Below are positions 30,121-54,509 of a stretch of DNA of 54,509 nt, piece after piece. The DNA comes from Gekko japonicus (taxonomy: Eukaryota). The notes under the pieces are model-generated. The model was not told the origin of the DNA and did no database searches. It worked only from the letters and a program-made list of their open reading frames with translations. The stretch's first letter is position 1, and every line of letters starts with the position of its first letter. The translations under genes were made by a program, and so were the position numbers. The stretch covers positions 161,913 to 216,421 of the forward strand of contig NW_015160308.1 of the NCBI RefSeq assembly GCF_001447785.1, in the 5' to 3' direction.

Positions 30121-33100
30121 TTGTTGTTGTTCAGTCGCACAGTCGAGTCCGACTCTTCGCGACCCCATGGACAATCTCCCGCCAGGCTCTCCTGTCTTCC
30201 GCCGTCCTCCGAAGTTGGCTCAATTTCATGTTCGTTGCATCGCTGACACTGTCTAACCATCTCATCCTTTGCCGTCCCCGTCTTCTTTGACCTTCAATCT
30301 TTCCCAGCATCAGGGTCTTTTCCAGTGAGTGCTCCCTTCTCATTTGGTGGCCAAAGTATTTGAGCTTCAGTTTCATTATCTGGCCTTCCAGGGAACAGTC
30401 AGGGTTGATTTCTTTGAGGATTGACTGATTTGTTCTTCTTGCAGTCCAAGGGACTCTCAAGAGTCTCCTCCAGCACCATAGTTCAAAAGAATCTATTCTT
30501 CGGCGCTCGGCCTTCCTTATAGTCCAACTCTCACAGCCATACATGACTACTGGGAATACCATTGCTTTGACCATGCGGACTTTTGTTGGCAGGGTGATGT
30601 CTCTACTTTTTATCATGCTGTTTAGGTTCGCCATCGCTTTCCTCCCAAGGAGCAGGCGTCTTTTAATTTCATGGCTGCAGTCACAGTCTGCGGTGATCTG
30701 GGATCCCAGGAACGTGAAGTCTGTCACTACTTCCACGACTTCCCCTTCTATTTGCCAAGGAGTGATGGGGCCGGATGCCATGATCTTAGTTTTTTTGATG
30801 TTGAGCTTCAAGCCCACTTTTGCGCTCTCCTCTTTTACTCTGAGCAAGAGGCTCTTTAGATCCTTTTCACTTTCAGCCATTAGAGTGGTATCATCTGCAT
30901 ATCTGAGGTTGTTGATCTTTTCCCCAGCAATCTTAATTCCCGCTTGTGATTCATCCAGGCCAGCATTTCGCATGATGTACTCTGCATATATATTAAATAA
31001 GCAAGGCGACAATATACATCCTTGTCGTACTCCTTTTCCTATGCTGAACCAATCAGTTGTTCCATATCCGGTTCTAACTGTCGCTTCTTGGCCCTTATAC
31101 AGGTTTCTCAAGAGACATGTGAGGTGGTCTGGTACTCCCATCTCTTTAAGGACCTGCCATAGTTTGTTGTGATCCACACAGTCAAAAGCTTTAGCATAGT
31201 CAATGAAGCAGAAGTAGATATTTTTCTGGTACTCTCTTGCTTTCTCCATAATCCAGCGAATGTTGGCAATTTGATCTCTAGTTCCTCTACCTCTTCGAAA
31301 CCCAGCTTGTACTTCTGGTAGTTCTCTATCCACGTACTGTTGAAGCCTAGCTTGTAGGATCTTGAGCATGACCTTGCTAGCGTGTGATATGAGTGCAATT
31401 GTGCGATAGTTTGAACATTCCTTGGCATTGCCCTTCTTTGGGATTGGAATGTATACTGACCTTTTCCAATCCTGTGGCCACTGTTGCGTTTTCCAAATTT
31501 GCTGGCAAATGGAGTGCAGCACTTTAACAGCATCATCTTCTAAGACTTTGAATAGCTCAGCTGGAATACCATCACCTCCACTAGCTTTGTTGTTAGCAAT
31601 GCTTTCTAAGGCCCATTTAACTTCACATTCCAGGATGTCTGGCTCGAGGTCAGTGATTATACCGTCGTGGTTGTCAAGGACATCGAGGTCTTTCTTGTAT
31701 AGTTCTTCTGTGTATTCTTGCCATCTTTTCCTAATCTCTTCTGCTTCTGTTAGGTCCCTACCGTTTTTGTCCTTTATCATGGCCAGCTTTGCATGGAACG
31801 CTCCCTTGATTTCTCCAACTTTCTTGAAGAGATCTCTAGTCCTTCCCATTCTATTGTTTTCTTCTATTACTTTGCACTGTTCATTCAGGAAGGCCTCCTT
31901 ATCTCTCCTTGCTGTTCTCTGGAAATCTGCGTTCAGTTGGGTAAATCTTTCCTTTTCGCCTTTGCCTTTCGCTTTCCTTCTTTCCTCTGCTATTTGTAAA
32001 GCCTCATCAGAAAGCCACTTTGCTTTCTTACATTTCTTTTTCTTTGGGATGGTGGTGATTGCTGCCTCCTGTACGATGTCACGAACCTCTGTCCATAGTT
32101 CTTCAGGCACTCTATCTATCAAATCCAGACCCTTGAATCTATTCTTCACCTCTACTGTATATTCATCAGGGATGCGATCTAGGTCAAACCTGAATGGCCT
32201 CGTGGTTTTCCCAATTTTCTTCAGTTTAAGTCTGAATTTTGCAATGAGTAGCTCATGATCTGAACCACAGTCAGCTCCAGGTCTTGTTTTTACTGACTGG
32301 ATAGAGCTTCTCCATCTTTGACTGCAAATTATATAGTCAATCTGATTTCGGTGTTGCCCATCTGGTGATGTCCATGTGTAGAGTCGCCTCTTAGGTTGTT
32401 GGAAAAGGGTGTTCGCTATGACCAGTGTGTTCTCTTGACAAAACTCTGTTAACCTTTGCCCTGCTTCATTTTGCTTTCCAAGGCCAAACTTGTCTGTTAT
32501 TCCAGTTACCTTTTGACTTCCTACTTTAGCATTCCAGTCCCCTATGATGATGAGGACATCATTTTTTGGTGTTAGTTCTAGGAGGTGTTGTAGGTCTTCA
32601 TAGAACCGGTCCACTTCAGCCTCTTCTGCATCAGTGGTTGGGGCATAGACTTGGATTACTGTGATGTTGAATGGTTTGCCTTGGAATCGGACAGAAATCA
32701 TTCTGTCATTTTTGAGATTGTATCCCAGTACTGCCTTTTGCACTCTCTTGTTGACTATAAAGGCCACACCATTTTTTCTACGAGATTCCTGGCCACAGTA
32801 GTAGATATAATGGTCTTCTGAGTTAAATTCGCCCATTCCTGTCCACTTTAGTTCACTGATTCCTAGGATATCGATGTTCAGTCTTGCCATCTCATTTTTG
32901 ACCACGTCAAGCTTACCTTGATTCATAGATCTTACATTCCAGGTTCCTATGTAGTATTGTTCTTTGCAGCATTGGACTTTCCTTTCACCATCAGACACAT
33001 CCACAACTGAGCGTCCTTTCGGCTTTGGCCCAGCCGCTTCACTCTTTCTGGGGTTACTTGTACTTGTCCTCTGCTCTTCCTCAGTAGCATATTGGACACC

Positions 33101-33338
33101 TTCCGACCTGAGGGGCTCATCTTCCGGCGTCATATCTTTTAGCCTTTTGATACTGTCCATGGGGTTTTCTTGGCAAAAATACTGGAGTGGGTTGCCATTT
33201 CCTTCTCCAGGTGGATCACGCTTGGTCTGAGTTCTCTGCTGTGGCCTGTCCGTCTTGGGTGGCCCTTCACGGCATAGCCCACAGCTTCATTGAACTGCGC
33301 AAGCCCCCTCGCCACGACAAGGCAGTGATCCATGAGGG
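30121..33338 (-). mobile_element. Full-length BovB (RTE-clade) LINE, ~3.2 kb
   Basis: BovB-type 5' UTR (ATGGATCACTGCCTTGTCGTGGCGAGGGGGCTTG), single ORF and (CAA)n 3' tail at 30121-30130. Confidence 0.95.
30131..33160 (-). CDS. BovB ORF: APE endonuclease + reverse transcriptase, 1009 aa, uninterrupted
   Basis: APE motifs IGTWNVRSMN, LGISELKW, GDWNAKVG, SDH. RT motifs FIDYAKAFD, GVRQGCILSP, LRYADD. Confidence 0.96.
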   Translation of the reverse strand: MDSIKRLKDMTPEDEPLRSEGVQYATEEEQRTSTSNPRKSEAAGPKPKGRSVVDVSDGERKVQCCKEQYYIGTWNVRSMNQGKLDVVKNEMARLNIDILGISELKWTGMGEFNSEDHYIYYCGQESRRKNGVAFIVNKRVQKAVLGYNLKNDRMISVRFQGKPFNITVIQVYAPTTDAEEAEVDRFYEDLQHLLELTPKNDVLIIIGDWNAKVGSQKVTGITDKFGLGKQNEAGQRLTEFCQENTLVIANTLFQQPKRRLYTWTSPDGQHRNQIDYIICSQRWRSSIQSVKTRPGADCGSDHELLIAKFRLKLKKIGKTTRPFRFDLDRIPDEYTVEVKNRFKGLDLIDRVPEELWTEVRDIVQEAAITTIPKKKKCKKAKWLSDEALQIAEERRKAKGKGEKERFTQLNADFQRTARRDKEAFLNEQCKVIEENNRMGRTRDLFKKVGEIKGAFHAKLAMIKDKNGRDLTEAEEIRKRWQEYTEELYKKDLDVLDNHDGIITDLEPDILECEVKWALESIANNKASGGDGIPAELFKVLEDDAVKVLHSICQQIWKTQQWPQDWKRSVYIPIPKKGNAKECSNYRTIALISHASKVMLKILQARLQQYVDRELPEVQAGFRRGRGTRDQIANIRWIMEKAREYQKNIYFCFIDYAKAFDCVDHNKLWQVLKEMGVPDHLTCLLRNLYKGQEATVRTGYGTTDWFSIGKGVRQGCILSPCLFNIYAEYIMRNAGLDESQAGIKIAGEKINNLRYADDTTLMAESEKDLKSLLLRVKEESAKVGLKLNIKKTKIMASGPITPWQIEGEVVEVVTDFTFLGSQITADCDCSHEIKRRLLLGRKAMANLNSMIKSRDITLPTKVRMVKAMVFPVVMYGCESWTIRKAERRRIDSFELWCWRRLLRVPWTARRTNQSILKEINPDCSLEGQIMKLKLKYFGHQMRREHSLEKTLMLGKIEGQRRRGRQRMRWLDSVSDATNMKLSQLRRTAEDRRAWREIVHGVAKSRTRLCD

Positions 33339-47696: not shown

Positions 47697-50210
47697 GATT
47701 GAATCCAGCAGGCCAGCTCAACCAAGGCCATGGGGCATGAATCACAGGTAGGGTTGCCAGGCACGGCACTGCCATTGGCGGGAGATGGGGGAGGCAGGCC
47801 TTTATCACGGGGGTGGGGATGTGATCACCGCCACTGTGCAATGATATTGCTTCCGGTGCAACCCAGAAGTGCCAACATCATGCCTCAGCAACACTCTTAA
47901 TGCTCGCACAAAAAATTCGATGGAAGCTATAGAATTTTTGGACGAGTGCTAGAGTGTCACACCAGCATGATGCTGGTGATTCTGGGTTGTAGTGGAAGTG
48001 ACATCAGCAGGGCCGGCTCACTCACTAGGCGAACTAGGCGATCGCCTAGAGCGGGGCGGCTCTTAGGGGCACCAAACTGCACCCGGCCCCGTACTCTGGG
48101 AGTTTCTTGATTATTTGTGTTTTTCATTCTTCCTAAAATACATTTATTTTTTAAAATTGGTGGGCGCACGGGGGGGGGAGAAGGGATCCTCGCCTAGGGT
48201 GCAAAATAAGCTGGAGCCGGCCCTGGATGAGCTCCCCCTCACTGGCAGTCTTCAAGCAGCAGCTGGACAAGCCCTTGTCAGGGATGCTCTTGGGCAGACC
48301 CTGCTTCCTTCCTTCCTTCCTTCCTTCCTTCCTTCCTTCCTTCCCATGCCATAGGATGCTCTGCAAGAAAATAGGAGGGTTTAAGACATTGCCTGCCACT
48401 GAGCATATCCAGAACACAATTTTGAAATGGTGTAGAACCTGACTTCCCATCCCTCCACTCTTTGAATTTCTCTTTTGATCAAGATGGAACTGCTTTGAAA
48501 TGGGCTCCAAATTCCTAAAAAAAAGAGAGAGGAAAAGGACTGCTAGATTTCAGAGAGAAGTTGGGTAAAGAGGAATTAAGCGGAATTAAGAGTCCTCTTA
48601 ACAATGCTAATGTGTATGTGGGGAGAAGACTTTGTTTTTGACAGGAAGTTGGGGTTTTAAGTGGAGATGCTGGGGATTGAACCTGGGACCTTCTGCATGC
48701 TAAACAGAGGTTCTTCCACAGAGCCACAACCTCCCCTCCCACCTTTAAAGACCCCGGTAAAGGAAAACAGGAAGAAACAGCCATGACTATTTCTGCCCAT
48801 CCCTTCCTTGGTACTTTCATCAACTGCCCTCCCAATCCTGCTGTGGCAAGCAGGACTGGTGCTGGGAAGCTGATGGGAAGGACTGGTGGCCAACCAGATG
48901 TGGAGAGGAATGGATGGGGAAGGCCTTTTCCCAGCATACTGAGGGACTGAATAGTATACGTCAGTTGTTCACATTGCAGCTTGGCAACCATAGTGAAAAT
49001 GAACAGGAATCTCTCCTCTCTCCTTATATATAATTGAATAGTGGGTGCCAAAGTTCTAATTCTAAAATGCACTCCCTTAGTGTATGGCTGATGGCACTGC
49101 TCCTCAGCATATATCACCACCAATCAGAAGGCAAAGCCCGGGTCCCGCCCACACCACAACTGCTGCGACAACCTGGTCTTTTGCATATGGAAGCTGATTG
49201 GACTTCACTCCATTCCACACCTCAAACTCCCCTCCCCGCAAGGCAGTTGGAATGTCAGTTGCATATGGAACCTGCTGTATTCTGGTGGCGTGCAGGTCCC
49301 AGATTCATGTTTTAAAAGCAGACTGACACTGTTTGCCCAAAACCAGAGCACTCTCCCAGAGCCTCTATCTAGATCTCATATTTATTTCCACAACGGGCCT
49401 TATTTCTAGTGTATGTTATAAGGGTTTGTGACTCAAGTACTCAGTATGGTTTCCTTAATGTGGGAAATATGCCTTCTGCTCTGAAGGTGTGTCATAATTC
49501 TTTATTTACGTAGAATAGTTACTCCCCACTTTTTTTTGCCTAGCAGGGACCCAAAGCAGCTTAGAACAGCTGAGAAATACAACACAATAAAGTCCAATAC
49601 AATGAATTACAATACAACGACGTTTAAAGAAAAGAAACAAACAAAAAAATAACCATCTGTAGCCTGGGCCAGTCCTGATTGAATCCAGTGGGCCAGCTCA
49701 ACCAAGGCCATGGGGCATGAATCACAGGTAGGGTTGCCAGGCACGGCACTGCCATTGGCGGGAGATGGGGGAGGCAGGCCTTTATCACGGGGGTGGGGAT
49801 GTGATCACCGCCACTGTGCAATGATATTGCTTCCGGTGCAACCCAGAAGTGCCAACATCATGCCTCAGCAACACTCTTAATGCTCGCACAAAAAATTCGA
49901 TGGAAGCTATAGAATTTTTGGACGAGTGCTAGAGTGTCACACCAGCATGATGCTGGTGATTCTGGGTTGTAGTGGAAGTGACATCAGCAGGGCCGGCTCA
50001 CTCACTAGGCGAACTAGGCGATCGCCTAGAGCGGGGCGGCTCTTAGGGGCACCAAACTGCACCCGGCCCCGTACTCTGGGAGTTTCTTGATTATTTGTGT
50101 TTTTCATTCTTCCTAAAATACATTTATTTTTTAAAGATGTGGGGGGGACGGGGGGGGGGGGGGGGGCAGAAGGGATCCTTGCCTAGGGTGCAAAATAAGC
50201 TGGAGCCGGC
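47697..50210. repeat. Near-identical ~520-bp direct repeat (47697-48220 vs 49677-50210)
   Basis: The same composite of flank + TAGGGTTGCCA element + nested CAGGGC MITE recurs 1980 bp apart. Confidence 0.9.
48225..48345 (+). repeat. CR1-like 3' fragment followed by a (CCTT)n microsatellite
   Basis: GAGCTCCCCCTCACTGGCAGTCTTCAAGCAGCAGCTGGACA resembles a CR1 ORF2 end, followed by about 10 CCTT units. Confidence 0.6.
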
Positions 50211-50699: not shown

Positions 50700-51120
50700 A
50701 GAGCCAGTTTGCTGTAGTGGTCAAGTGCGTGGACTGGGAGAACCAGGTTTGATTCCCCACGCCTCCACTTGCAGCTGCTGGATGACCTTGGGCAAGCCAT
50801 ACTTCTCCCAGAGCTGTTCTTGAAAGAGCAGTTCTCGAAAGAGCTTTCTCAGCCCCACCTACCTCACAGGTTGCCTGTTGTGGAGAGGGGAAGGGAAAAG
50901 GAGTTTGTAAGCCGCTCTGAGACTCCAAGTGAAGGGTGGGGTATAAATCCAGTCTCTTCTTTATTAAGAGAGCCAGTTTGGTGTAGTGGTTAAGTGTGCG
51001 GACTCTAATCTGGGAGAACCGGGTTTGATTCCCCACTCCTCCACTTGCACCTGGCTGGATGACCTTGGGCAAGCCATAGTTCTGATAAGAGCTGTTCTTG
51101 AAAAAGAGCAGTTTCTATCA
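50700..51120 (+). mobile_element. Two tandem Squam3-like tRNA-derived SINEs (second 3'-truncated); other copies at ~3075-3150, 13400-13633, 17880-18075, 19015-19250, 36690-36806, 46535-46786, 52857-53150
   Basis: Head GAGCCAGTTTGGTGTAGTGGTTAAG..GGTTTGATTCCCCA, body CTCAGCCCCACCTACCTCACAGGG and (CTT)n tail. Confidence 0.8.
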
Positions 51121-51122
51121 AG

Positions 51123-51867
51123 AATCCCTGGCACCCATGACACCATGAGCCTTTTTGGTGGCTCAAACATTCGCTGCCAGAGCTGGCCCCTTGAGGCTCA
51201 GCTAGAGGCCGGCATACGCTTCCTGGATATCCGCTGCAAACTGGAAGAGGGCCACTTCCTTATTTACCACGTCAATACTTACCAGGAGGCTGACTTTTCC
51301 ACTGTCCTCAAAGTTACCTTGAGCTTCCTGAAGCGGCACCCGCGGGAGACAGTCCTCATGAGAGTCAAAGAGGAACTCCCCATTCTCCCCGATGCAGATT
51401 TCGGGCCCCGTTTGCGACGCTACCTGGATGAAGAAGGCCAAGGCCAAGTTTGGGTGAAAGAAGCCATTCCCACCTTGGGCGAGGCACGGGGGAAGATTGT
51501 CATCTTGGAGGAGCTGGAGAACGAGATCCTGGGGGTGCCCTACGAGGCCCTGAGCGTTGGCGACTCCTGGCACGTTCTCTCTGCAGAGTCCAAGTGGGAT
51601 CGAGTTTTGGAGCACCTGGATACGGCAGAGACCACTAGCCATGCCACTCTGCACCTCACCTTTTGCTCCGGCAATGGGCTCTTCACCAACCCCGAGGAAC
51701 TGGCCCAAGACATCAACCAACGCTGTTATGAACATCTGAAAGCCCAGGCTGGGAAAGCGGGGCGGTGGGGTGTGGTGATCATGGACTTTCCCGGTGCAGG
51801 ACTTATCAGAAATATTGTGGAGAGTAACCTGGAAACGGGGAATGATGACACAACGGCTCGGTTGTGA
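51123..51867 (+). pseudogene. 5'-truncated near-identical duplicate of the PI-PLC gene, fused in frame to a SINE head (pseudogene, chimera or assembly artefact)
   Basis: Identity with the right copy starts abruptly at AATCCCTGGCACC (IPGTHD). Only about 3 substitutions are visible in the CDS. The native acceptor, ATG and first ~33 codons are missing. Confidence 0.75.
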
Positions 51868-52445
51868 TGAAACAGTGACTCACAGGAGAAGAGGTTCTGC
51901 AGCATTCTGGACCAATGCCGGGGGCTGCTTGGTGGTAGTTTGAGTCTACTGAGACTCTGCTGGGGTTTCTTCCACCCTGTCTGGAAGCCAAGCCCTCTGC
52001 TGAAGAGGTCCTAGTTGCAGATATGTGACGGTGGGTGGTGGTTATGCAGTGTTGCCTAGAATTAGGCTATTGCTTTAATGCTCGGTGGTGGGCAATGTTC
52101 CCTCTAAGCTGTGGGGTCTTGTGAGCAAAAATTCTACTTTGTGAGCTACTGGCATTAAAGTTGTGAGCAAGAGATTTTGCTGCTGGATAAACTAGTTTCC
52201 TCTGGAGTCATCCTTCCTGAGCCAAGACAAAAACCTGTGAGCCAGAGGCTCAAAAACTGTGAGCTAGCTCACACTAACTCAGCTTAGAGGGAACACTGGT
52301 GGTGGGTCTGACCAAAGGACTGCCTTGCTCGGGGTTTGGCCACTGGAATGAAATTGGATGACGTATTTTAATCCTTGTGTTTGTCCCAGGCTTGGGAAAT
52401 AGCTTCATTGTTTTATATTTTGTGTAACAGTCCCCCCGAGACCTG

Positions 52446-52730
52446 GGGTGATTTCCCACAAGCGCTGCTCCGCGTTCACTCTTCTCTTTGGCCCGATGGT
52501 ACGTGTCAATTTCACACAAGCTGCTGCGCGGCTGCATTTTGCCTCGCAGCTTCGTGCGATTTCCCCCGTGTCTACTCAATCCTGTTTTTTGAGGACTGAG
52601 TAGACGCGGGGGAAATCGCACGAAGCTGCGGGGCAGAATGTGGGTGTGCAGCAGCTTGTGTGAAATTGACACGTACTATCGGGGCAAAAGGGAGGAGTGA
52701 GCGCGGAGCAGCACTTGTGGGAAATCACCC
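52446..52730. mobile_element. PIF/Harbinger-type palindromic MITE
   Basis: Long TIRs GGGTGATTTCCCACAAG/CTTGTGGGAAATCACCC and 3-bp TSD CTG. Related to the element at 20642. Confidence 0.8.
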
Positions 52731-53254
52731 CTGGTTAAAAGCCAGCAGTGTATATCTAGCCGGCATGTAATTTTTGGGGGGGTTGGGATTTGGGTGTGTG
52801 AAAGAGTACCTTTGCTTTCATATAGCTGTCGTTCCATTAACAACTTCAAACAACATTTGGTTTGGTGTAGTGGTTAAGTGTGCGGACTCTGATCTGGGAG
52901 AACCGGGTTTGATTCCCCACTCCTCCACTTGCAGCTGCTGGATGACCTTGGGCAAGCCATAGTTCTCTCAGAGCTGTTCTCTCAAGGACAATTCTGGAAA
53001 GAGCTCTCTCAGCCCCACCTACATCACAGGGTGTCTGTTGTGGGGGCGGGAAAGAAAAGGAATTTGTAAGGTGCTCTGAGACTCCGGTGAAGGGTGGAGT
53101 ATAAATTCAATCTCCTCCTCCTCTTCTTCCTCTTCTTTTTCTTCTTCTTTTTGCAAATTATTGAGTCCTAGAGTTAGAAGAAGGCTCCTAGTTCCCCTAA
53201 TACAAGCTTCTGCTTTATGCAGAAGGGCAAAAGCTAGAGCATCCTCAACAGATG

Positions 53255-53452
53255 AACACAGGAAGCTACCTAATTATGAATCAGAATATTGATCCACCAG
53301 AGTAATTACTGGCTACACAGAACTGACTCTGTCTCAGACAGAGGTCTTTCCCATCACTTATAACCTGATCCTTCAATGCAGACACCAGGGATTGAACCTG
53401 GGACCTTCTGCATACCAAACACATGCTCTGCCACTGAGCCAAACCTCTCCCC
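53255..53452 (-). mobile_element. tRNA-derived SINE (Squam2-like); copies at ~11640-12305 (interrupted), 44405-44605, 48640-48745
   Basis: Reverse strand GGGGAGAGGTTTGGCTCAGTGGCAGAGCA..GGTTCAATCCCTGG carries the A and B boxes. Confidence 0.65.
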
Positions 53453-53577
53453 AGATGGATGAGCAGGCTCTGCTTGAAGACTTTCAGCGAGAGCCCAAGG
53501 TAACTGGTTCCACTGACAATCTGCTCACTTCTCCTTCTCATGTTGCTTCCTCTCCTTTTCAGGTGAATCTACCAACC

Positions 53578-54423
53578 ATGGATCAGACGGAGTCATTCGA
53601 TAACACTCCTCAGCCTGTTGCTTCCCTCCCTGACTGGATGTCCGACCTACCTGACCACCTTTCCATTTCCAGGATCTCAATCCCTGGCACCCATGACACC
53701 ATGAGCCTTTTTGGTGGCTCAAACATACGCTGCCAGAGCTGGCCCCTTGAGGCTCAGCTAGAGGCCGGCATACGCTTCCTGGATATCCGCTGCAAACTGG
53801 AAGAGGGCCACTTCCTTATTTACCACGTCAATACTTACCAGGAGGCTGACTTTTCCACTGTCCTCAAAGTTACCTTGAGCTTCCTGAAGCGGCACCCGCG
53901 GGAGACAGTCCTCATGAGAGTCAAAGAGGAACTCCCCATTCTCCCCGATGCAGATTTCGGGCCCCGTTTGCGACGCTACCTGGATGAAGAAGGCCAAGGC
54001 CAAGTTTGGGTGAAAGAAGCCATTCCCACCTTGGGCGAGGCACGGGGGAAGATTGTCATCTTGGAGGAGCTGGAGAACGAGATCCTGGGGGTGCCCTACG
54101 AGGCCCTGAGCGTTGGCGACTCCTGGCACGTTCTCTCTGCAGAGTCCAAGTGGGATCGAGTTTTGGAGCACCTGGATACGGCAGAGACCACTAGCCATGC
54201 CACTCTGCACCTCACCTTTTGCTCCGGCAATGGGCTCTTCACCAACCCCGAGGAACTGGCCCAAGACATCAACCAACGCTGTTATGAACATCTGAAAGCC
54301 CAGGCTGGGAAAGCGGGGCGGTGGGGTGTGGTGATCATGGACTTTCCCGGTGCAGGACTTATCAGAAATATTGTGGAGAGTAACCTGAAAACGGGGAATG
54401 ATGACACAACTGCTCGGTTGTGA
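53578..54423 (+). CDS. Bacterial-type phosphatidylinositol-specific phospholipase C (1-phosphatidylinositol phosphodiesterase-like), complete single coding exon, 281 aa
   Basis: Motifs WMS..SIPGTHDT, QLEAGIRFLDIRC, IYH, ETVLMRVKEE, PTLGEARGKIVIL and GVVIMDFPG are typical of the Bacillus/Listeria PI-PLC catalytic domain. Kozak accATGG, preceded by a polypyrimidine + AG acceptor at 53561-53562. Confidence 0.9.
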   Translation: MDQTESFDNTPQPVASLPDWMSDLPDHLSISRISIPGTHDTMSLFGGSNIRCQSWPLEAQLEAGIRFLDIRCKLEEGHFLIYHVNTYQEADFSTVLKVTLSFLKRHPRETVLMRVKEELPILPDADFGPRLRRYLDEEGQGQVWVKEAIPTLGEARGKIVILEELENEILGVPYEALSVGDSWHVLSAESKWDRVLEHLDTAETTSHATLHLTFCSGNGLFTNPEELAQDINQRCYEHLKAQAGKAGRWGVVIMDFPGAGLIRNIVESNLKTGNDDTTARL

Positions 54424-54509
54424 TGAAACAATGACTCACAGGAGAAGAGGTTCTGCAACATTCTGGACAATACCGGGGGTTGCTTGGTGGTAGTTTGAGT
54501 CTACTGAGA

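Follow-up and report, generated by a model that had tools for sequence, protein, structure and literature searches.

The bacterial Ca2+-independent PI-PLCs (EC 4.6.1.13) are a textbook enzyme class and count among the best-understood phospholipases. The enzymes of Bacillus and Staphylococcus release GPI anchors efficiently, and PlcA of Listeria monocytogenes is a secreted virulence factor carrying a signal peptide, a feature that is typical of the bacterial members but not demanded by the fold. The small, single-domain vertebrate proteins PLCXD1 and PLCXD2, which have a bacterial-like fold, were recently demonstrated to cleave PI intracellularly (PMC13542105; bioRxiv 10.64898/2026.09.13.750855), and PI-PLCs of the cd08586 type were found in the venom of the parasitoid wasp Cotesia chilonis (PMC5408209). 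Vertebrate genes of the bacterial type are listed in expression and GWAS tables from chicken and seabream (PMC5291977, PMC11252595), and our literature search found incidental mentions only, with no study of the vertebrate family and no enzymatic, localisation or tissue data for any vertebrate member.

Near the end of the window, by which we mean the whole 54,509-nt stretch of Gekko japonicus DNA that was analysed, lies a gene whose complete coding sequence of 281 codons plus stop (positions 53578-54423, forward strand) was delimited by its open reading frame, Pfam and structure matches and alignment. Our main reading, to which we assign a probability of about 0.72, is that it encodes a functional, leaderless, Ca2+-independent PI-PLC of the bacterial type that acts intracellularly on PI, and that it is the vertically inherited gecko orthologue of a gene lost in therians.

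The assignment to the bacterial type, the PI-PLCc_BcPLC_like group of CDD, is based on the full-length match to Listeria PlcA, the TM scores of the structural model and the conservation of the catalytic residues. The Pfam PI-PLC-X match of the gecko protein is modest (E 5.5e-8), the NCBIfam models used for bacterial and archaeal naming give no match to it, and PF26146 is listed for many of its homologues. A single-sequence search of solved structures ranked PlcA first (1AOD/2PLC, E 2.8e-28, residues 16-269 of 281), followed by the PI-PLCs of Bacillus and Staphylococcus, and returned no eukaryotic PLC. With a profile of 16 family members the match reached E 1.9e-61 for PlcA (positions 14-275) and about 1e-39 for the Bacillus and Staphylococcus enzymes, as against 5e-3 for PLC-gamma, where it covered the X half only. 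The AlphaFold2 model, built from 51 sequences (mean pLDDT 93.2, pTM 0.92), predicts one distorted (beta/alpha) barrel domain, for which Foldseek gives TM scores of 0.81/0.83 to 1AOD, 0.72-0.79 to the Staphylococcus and Bacillus PI-PLCs and at most 0.54 to Ca-dependent bacterial and eukaryotic PLCs. Among solved proteins PlcA stands closest, sharing about 30% identity from end to end and catalytic residues that line up, but it is a secreted protein, whereas the gecko protein is predicted to be leaderless and is the product of a spliced vertebrate gene. The enzymes of Bacillus cereus/thuringiensis and Staphylococcus aureus (1PTD, 3EA1, 3V18) have the fold and the catalytic residues in common with it but are less similar (22-25% identity) and some 15-25 residues longer. 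The X/Y halves with PH, EF-hand and C2 architecture of the Ca2+-dependent PLCs are absent from the 281-aa gecko protein. The original prediction of a Ca-independent, bacterial-type PI-PLC that keeps its main catalytic residues and is distinct from the multidomain eukaryotic PLCs is thus confirmed by the sequence and the predicted fold.

The motifs on which that prediction had been built are all found in the protein (THD 38-40, DIR 69-71, YH 82-83, KEE 116-118, PTLGEARGKIV 150-160 and MDF 254-256). They include the catalytic residues H39, D40, R71, H83 and D255 and inositol-binding K116 and R156, which together with D181 and the aromatic W183 complete a set that is invariant in 23 of the 23 tetrapod rows of the alignment. 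Judging from alignment offsets, we take the five catalytic residues to be the counterparts of His45, Asp46, Arg84, His93 and Asp278 of PlcA; in Bacillus they presumably correspond to His32, Asp33, Arg69, His82 and Asp274, a numbering that is partly confirmed by PDB titles, those of mutant structures bearing out H32, H82, D274, R163 and D198. Likewise, we take K116, R156, D181 and W183 to match the inositol-binding Lys115, Arg163, Asp198 and Tyr200. If the chemistry follows that of the bacterial enzymes of solved structure, His39 would deprotonate the inositol 2-OH while being held in orientation by Asp255, His83 together with Asp40 would protonate the leaving diacylglycerol, and Arg71 would occupy the position that Ca2+ has in eukaryotic PLCs. 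The expected products would be diacylglycerol and inositol 1,2-cyclic phosphate, the latter subsequently being hydrolysed to inositol 1-phosphate.

At the DNA level, the 3' end of an intron, comprising a polypyrimidine tract and an AG acceptor (ttcctctccttttcag; 53546-53562, forward strand), precedes the coding exon, with the cut at 53562|53563 (...ttgcttcctctccttttcag|GTG). The 5' UTR portion of the exon (53563-53577, forward strand) leads into an ACC ATG G start, whose A at -3 and G at +4 provide a Kozak context, and the 3' UTR begins at 54424 (forward strand) and, as judged from the transcript contig described below, extends past the end of the window at 54509. The reading frame of 281 codons is uninterrupted, a length that would be free of stops by chance in about 2e-6 of cases per frame start at the local base composition, and is nested in a longer naive frame from 53392. 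The intact 281-aa frame, the vertebrate splice acceptor and the Kozak ATG, all of which had been proposed from the letters, are hence in place.

The gene is also transcribed. In one sequencing run (X1) a 1128-nt contig with a depth of 81.2 runs gapless and colinear along 53560-54509 and breaks off at the acceptor, and the depth is 0 across 53527-53559 and 53150-53319. The record of the run offers only a guess as to its nature; we take it to be RNA because the contig breaks at the splice site, the intron is empty and the run's contig set is small, and we infer that the contig is a spliced mRNA using the predicted acceptor. It bears out the claim of an intron-free catalytic domain and contradicts the possibility, weighed with that claim, that the gene has no transcripts. 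At its 5' end the contig carries 14 extra letters that match nowhere in 51960-54509, the interval in which an upstream exon preceding 53563 was looked for with this contig and not found. At its 3' end it continues for at least 164 nt beyond 54509 with sequence resembling 51955-52118, the tail of an upstream duplicate of the gene. Another contig of the same run, 531 nt long and with a depth of 75.6 close to that of the mRNA contig, matches the intronic positions 53389-53526 exactly and has a further 393 nt that lie off the window, with an edge devoid of GT/AG; its source may be a further copy beyond the window, a structural allele or a different transcript. Of the words sampled from 53400-54509, a fraction of 0.68-0.83 was present in each of eight runs belonging to two studies and, since the exon makes up 0.85 of this interval, these runs contain the exon and not the intron. 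Three raw G. japonicus RNA-seq runs, of each of which 3-12% was read, had no read that fell on the exon. We conclude that the gene is expressed in a restricted manner or at a low level and not ubiquitously, the zero in these three runs meaning "not seen" and not silence.

The surroundings of the locus include SINE-like repeats and a LINE ORF2, the latter a long open frame of 1009 aa at 30131-33160 on the reverse strand with endonuclease and reverse transcriptase domains (Exo_endo_phos E 5e-19, RVT_1 E 3e-40). One SINE-like repeat lies in the adjoining upstream intron (53330-53451, no strand assigned, 5' bound approximate), as seen from the heap of reads from elsewhere over bins 53320-53489 in the RNA read mapping and from the blastn alignment of 53388-53451 to 48673-48736, and it makes the naive frame, at 343 or 322 aa, exceed the true coding sequence. 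Both the 343-aa frame from 53392 and the 322-aa database gene call (P0001, ATG 53455) span the intron and this repeat and were rejected. A donor at 53499|53500 (AAG|GTAACT), which would define an in-frame intron of 63 nt and lengthen the N-terminus by 20 aa from the ATG at 53455, was judged unlikely because the X1 contig carries the genomic CAG at 53560-53562 and not AAG.

About 2.5 kb upstream of the complete gene (copy B), a 5'-truncated duplicate (copy A) covers codons 35-281 and the 3' flank (51123-51954, forward strand) with 99% identity to copy B and is bordered by SINE-like DNA on the 5' side (region 50976-51954). There is no Met upstream of its equivalent of the catalytic His39, and copy A alone can therefore not encode an active enzyme. 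At seven of the eight sites that separate the two copies the X1 contig shows the letters of copy B. Only 3 of the 745 coding positions distinguish the copies, as against 5 of the 86 that follow the stop (Fisher p 5e-4). This concentration of differences behind the stop codon disfavours a simple assembly or haplotype duplicate and suggests gene conversion or coding constraint.

Regarding the location of the enzyme, the gecko protein has a hydrophilic N-terminus (MDQTESFDNTPQP...). The RefSeq proteins of Paroedura picta and Eublepharis macularius, which resemble the Gekko protein closely (84-86% identity, 282-285 aa, same catalytic residues), start at a Met identical to that at 53578, in line with the earlier remark that no signal peptide is evident. 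Ahead of PGTHD, the 9-residue Kyte-Doolittle mean peaks at about 0.8 in the gecko compared to 2-3.9 in frogs, fishes and bacteria, and a hydrophobic N-terminal segment is found in none of 10 squamate, platypus and short bird models but in all frogs, fishes and bacteria. In frogs, a signal sequence is followed by G(D/E)QTPAFD, while the squamate, platypus and short bird models begin with Met and 3-8 residues followed by (E/D)QTEAFDN, so that the amniote starts fall about at the expected cleavage point of the frog signal peptide; a few squamate and bird models (e.g. Tiliqua, Hemicordylus) have longer N-termini that are not hydrophobic. As amniote proteins begin where the signal peptide is cleaved off in frogs and fishes, the gecko enzyme is most likely leaderless and would cleave PI within the cell, its substrate being PI on cytoplasmic membrane faces and not the GPI anchors of the cell surface. 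Compared with the geckos, in which the RefSeq orthologues show nothing substantial in addition, frogs and fishes thus have an extra N-terminal signal peptide and birds an extra C-terminal tail of 60-107 aa that is without counterpart in other groups.

The acceptor lies 15 nt ahead of the ATG, and these five codons are in frame and free of stops; judged from the window alone, an upstream exon could still add an N-terminal extension. Together with the position of the acceptor near the boundary of signal peptide and mature chain in frogs, this would be compatible with a secreted enzyme whose signal peptide is encoded upstream and which releases GPI-anchored proteins or cleaves extracellular PI. 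We nevertheless consider secretion improbable, as the two gecko RefSeq models have this very Met as their start, those of eight further squamates, the platypus and the short birds begin within 3-8 residues of it, the longer Tiliqua and Hemicordylus models gain no hydrophobic segment, and the gecko ATG stands in a strong Kozak context. Leaderless members that start with Met-Gly (MGN..., MGDTKS..., MGSRQT...) are also found among sponges, caecilians and some hemichordates (P0095, P0088, P0096, P0101, P0121, P0139); this start may be a sign of N-myristoylation and of recruitment to membranes from the cytosolic side.

A word search with the gecko protein returned 1406 relatives. The closest named ones are RefSeq proteins termed "1-phosphatidylinositol phosphodiesterase-like" from Paroedura picta (86% identity) and Eublepharis macularius (84%), and identity is 71-79% in other squamates, about 56-62% in birds, 59% in the platypus and 42-46% in frogs. 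Pipefish, bowfin, hemichordates and a sponge come next in the ranking and bacteria come last (37-39%). When a hemichordate member served as query in a second search, many teleosts, two caecilians, a spider mite and further bacteria joined the list; some of the teleost orthologues are named after zebrafish si:dkey-266f7.9. Neither search had a therian, turtle or crocodilian among the matches listed (the 120 best, which include the platypus at 59%). RefSeq orthologues in squamates, birds, frogs and many teleosts, with the platypus as a mammalian addition, substantiate the earlier statement that similar genes are annotated yet unstudied in non-mammalian vertebrates. With orthologues in squamates, birds, platypus, frogs, caecilians, teleosts, bowfin, hemichordates and sponges, the view of the gene as a speciality of lizards can no longer be held.

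Unrooted maximum-likelihood trees were inferred by quick searches with SH-aLRT support from a sampling of vertebrates, other non-insect animals and bacteria, and their deep branches are weakly supported. Among tetrapods the topology is frogs + (platypus + (birds, squamates)) with SH-aLRT values of 95-100, which matches the species tree, and the Gekko gene is placed beside Paroedura inside a gecko clade with Eublepharis (support 98-100). The teleosts form a separate clade (support 100), and all 11 of 11 named bacteria are separated by a branch with a support of 93 from all named animals apart from the mite. The mite sequence, from Panonychus citri (P0179, with a signal peptide), lies among the bacterial sequences on a long branch and could reflect an independent acquisition or an artefact. 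In the hemichordate Ptychodera flava (P0082, P0085, P0087) there are many paralogues, several of which have one or both catalytic His replaced (H39Y or H83K/N) and are candidate pseudoenzymes.

The tetrapod tree is the species tree and the named bacteria lie on its opposite side, which argues against the horizontal acquisition that the original prediction had offered as a possible reason for the lizard gene. The wide spread in animals, the tetrapod topology and the separate bacteria largely describe a broadly conserved eukaryotic clade, the alternative that had been set against such a transfer. The distribution is "patchy" only with regard to losses, with no therians, turtles or crocodilians listed. 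On the present sequences, the history is one of vertical descent with losses, and nothing points to a transfer into reptiles, amniotes or tetrapods; the gene was inherited vertically since the tetrapod ancestor at least, probably since early animals, and would have been lost in therian mammals. That the sequence is a bacterial contaminant, reached lizards by a recent transfer or is a relic that is dead or not expressed, as its intronless coding sequence and its bacterial solved relatives might suggest, is scarcely credible: vertebrate DNA with SINE-like repeats and the LINE ORF2 at 30131-33160 surrounds the gene, which is spliced and has a transcript, ten other squamates have orthologues that are 71-86% identical in a tree that follows the species tree, and every catalytic residue is retained.

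A different matter is an ancient transfer from bacteria to an early animal or an earlier eukaryote with vertical descent ever since, which concerns the origin of the family only and is compatible with a functional gecko enzyme. Animal proteins are 35-43% identical across phyla and about equally so to actinobacterial and proteobacterial enzymes, the closest solved relatives are all bacterial, and few phyla are represented (sponges, hemichordates, vertebrates and a mite), all of which fits such an event. However, plain vertical descent likewise predicts the position of the named animals, minus the mite, on one side and of all named bacteria on the other, and an unrooted tree of animals and bacteria gives no direction. 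We therefore regard an ancient transfer as possible but unlikely, and retain vertical descent as the history of the tetrapod genes.

The nearest functional analogues of the gecko enzyme are PLCXD1 and PLCXD2. Like PLCXD1-3, it is small, single-domain and endowed with a bacterial-like fold, and it is predicted to be intracellular and PI-cleaving as well. PLCXD1-3 are, however, present in therians and encoded by multi-exon genes, while the gecko family is absent from the therian matches and has a single coding exon. For these reasons and because RefSeq names its members after the bacterial enzyme, it apparently constitutes another family. Membership of the gecko protein in the vertebrate X-domain-only PLCs PLCXD1-3 could draw on the shared single-domain, bacterial-like fold, on the PI hydrolysis reported for PLCXD1 and PLCXD2 (PMC13542105; bioRxiv 10.64898/2026.09.13.750855) and on one bird annotation project that calls the bird orthologues "PLCX3 protein". 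It is nonetheless very improbable, as therians own PLCXD1-3 and yet provide none of the 120 best matches, RefSeq naming of the orthologues follows the bacterial enzyme, PlcA is matched over its full length with E 2e-61, and the coding sequence is a single exon. The PI-PLCs of Cotesia chilonis are likewise bacterial-type and animal-encoded, but they are secreted components of an insect venom.

The importance of the gecko gene is modest, given that the enzyme class is known and that vertebrate genes of this family are already in RefSeq, which makes it an added orthologue and not a new system. What stays interesting is an apparently unstudied vertebrate family with an apparent loss of the secretion signal in amniotes and a loss in therians; since the family is absent from the therian match lists, work in mouse and human has never met it. 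The demonstration in 2026 that PLCXD1 and PLCXD2 cleave PI inside cells makes a second PI-PLC of birds and reptiles, closer to the bacterial enzymes, worth a small project. As a tentative proposal, to which we give somewhat less than even odds, a secreted PI-PLC became a leaderless cytosolic enzyme on the amniote stem, was kept in squamates, birds and monotremes and lost in therians, and would provide sauropsids with a Ca2+-independent route separate from PLCXD1-3. If this is true, sauropsids would own a Ca2+-independent conversion of PI into diacylglycerol and cyclic inositol phosphate that the placental model animals are without.
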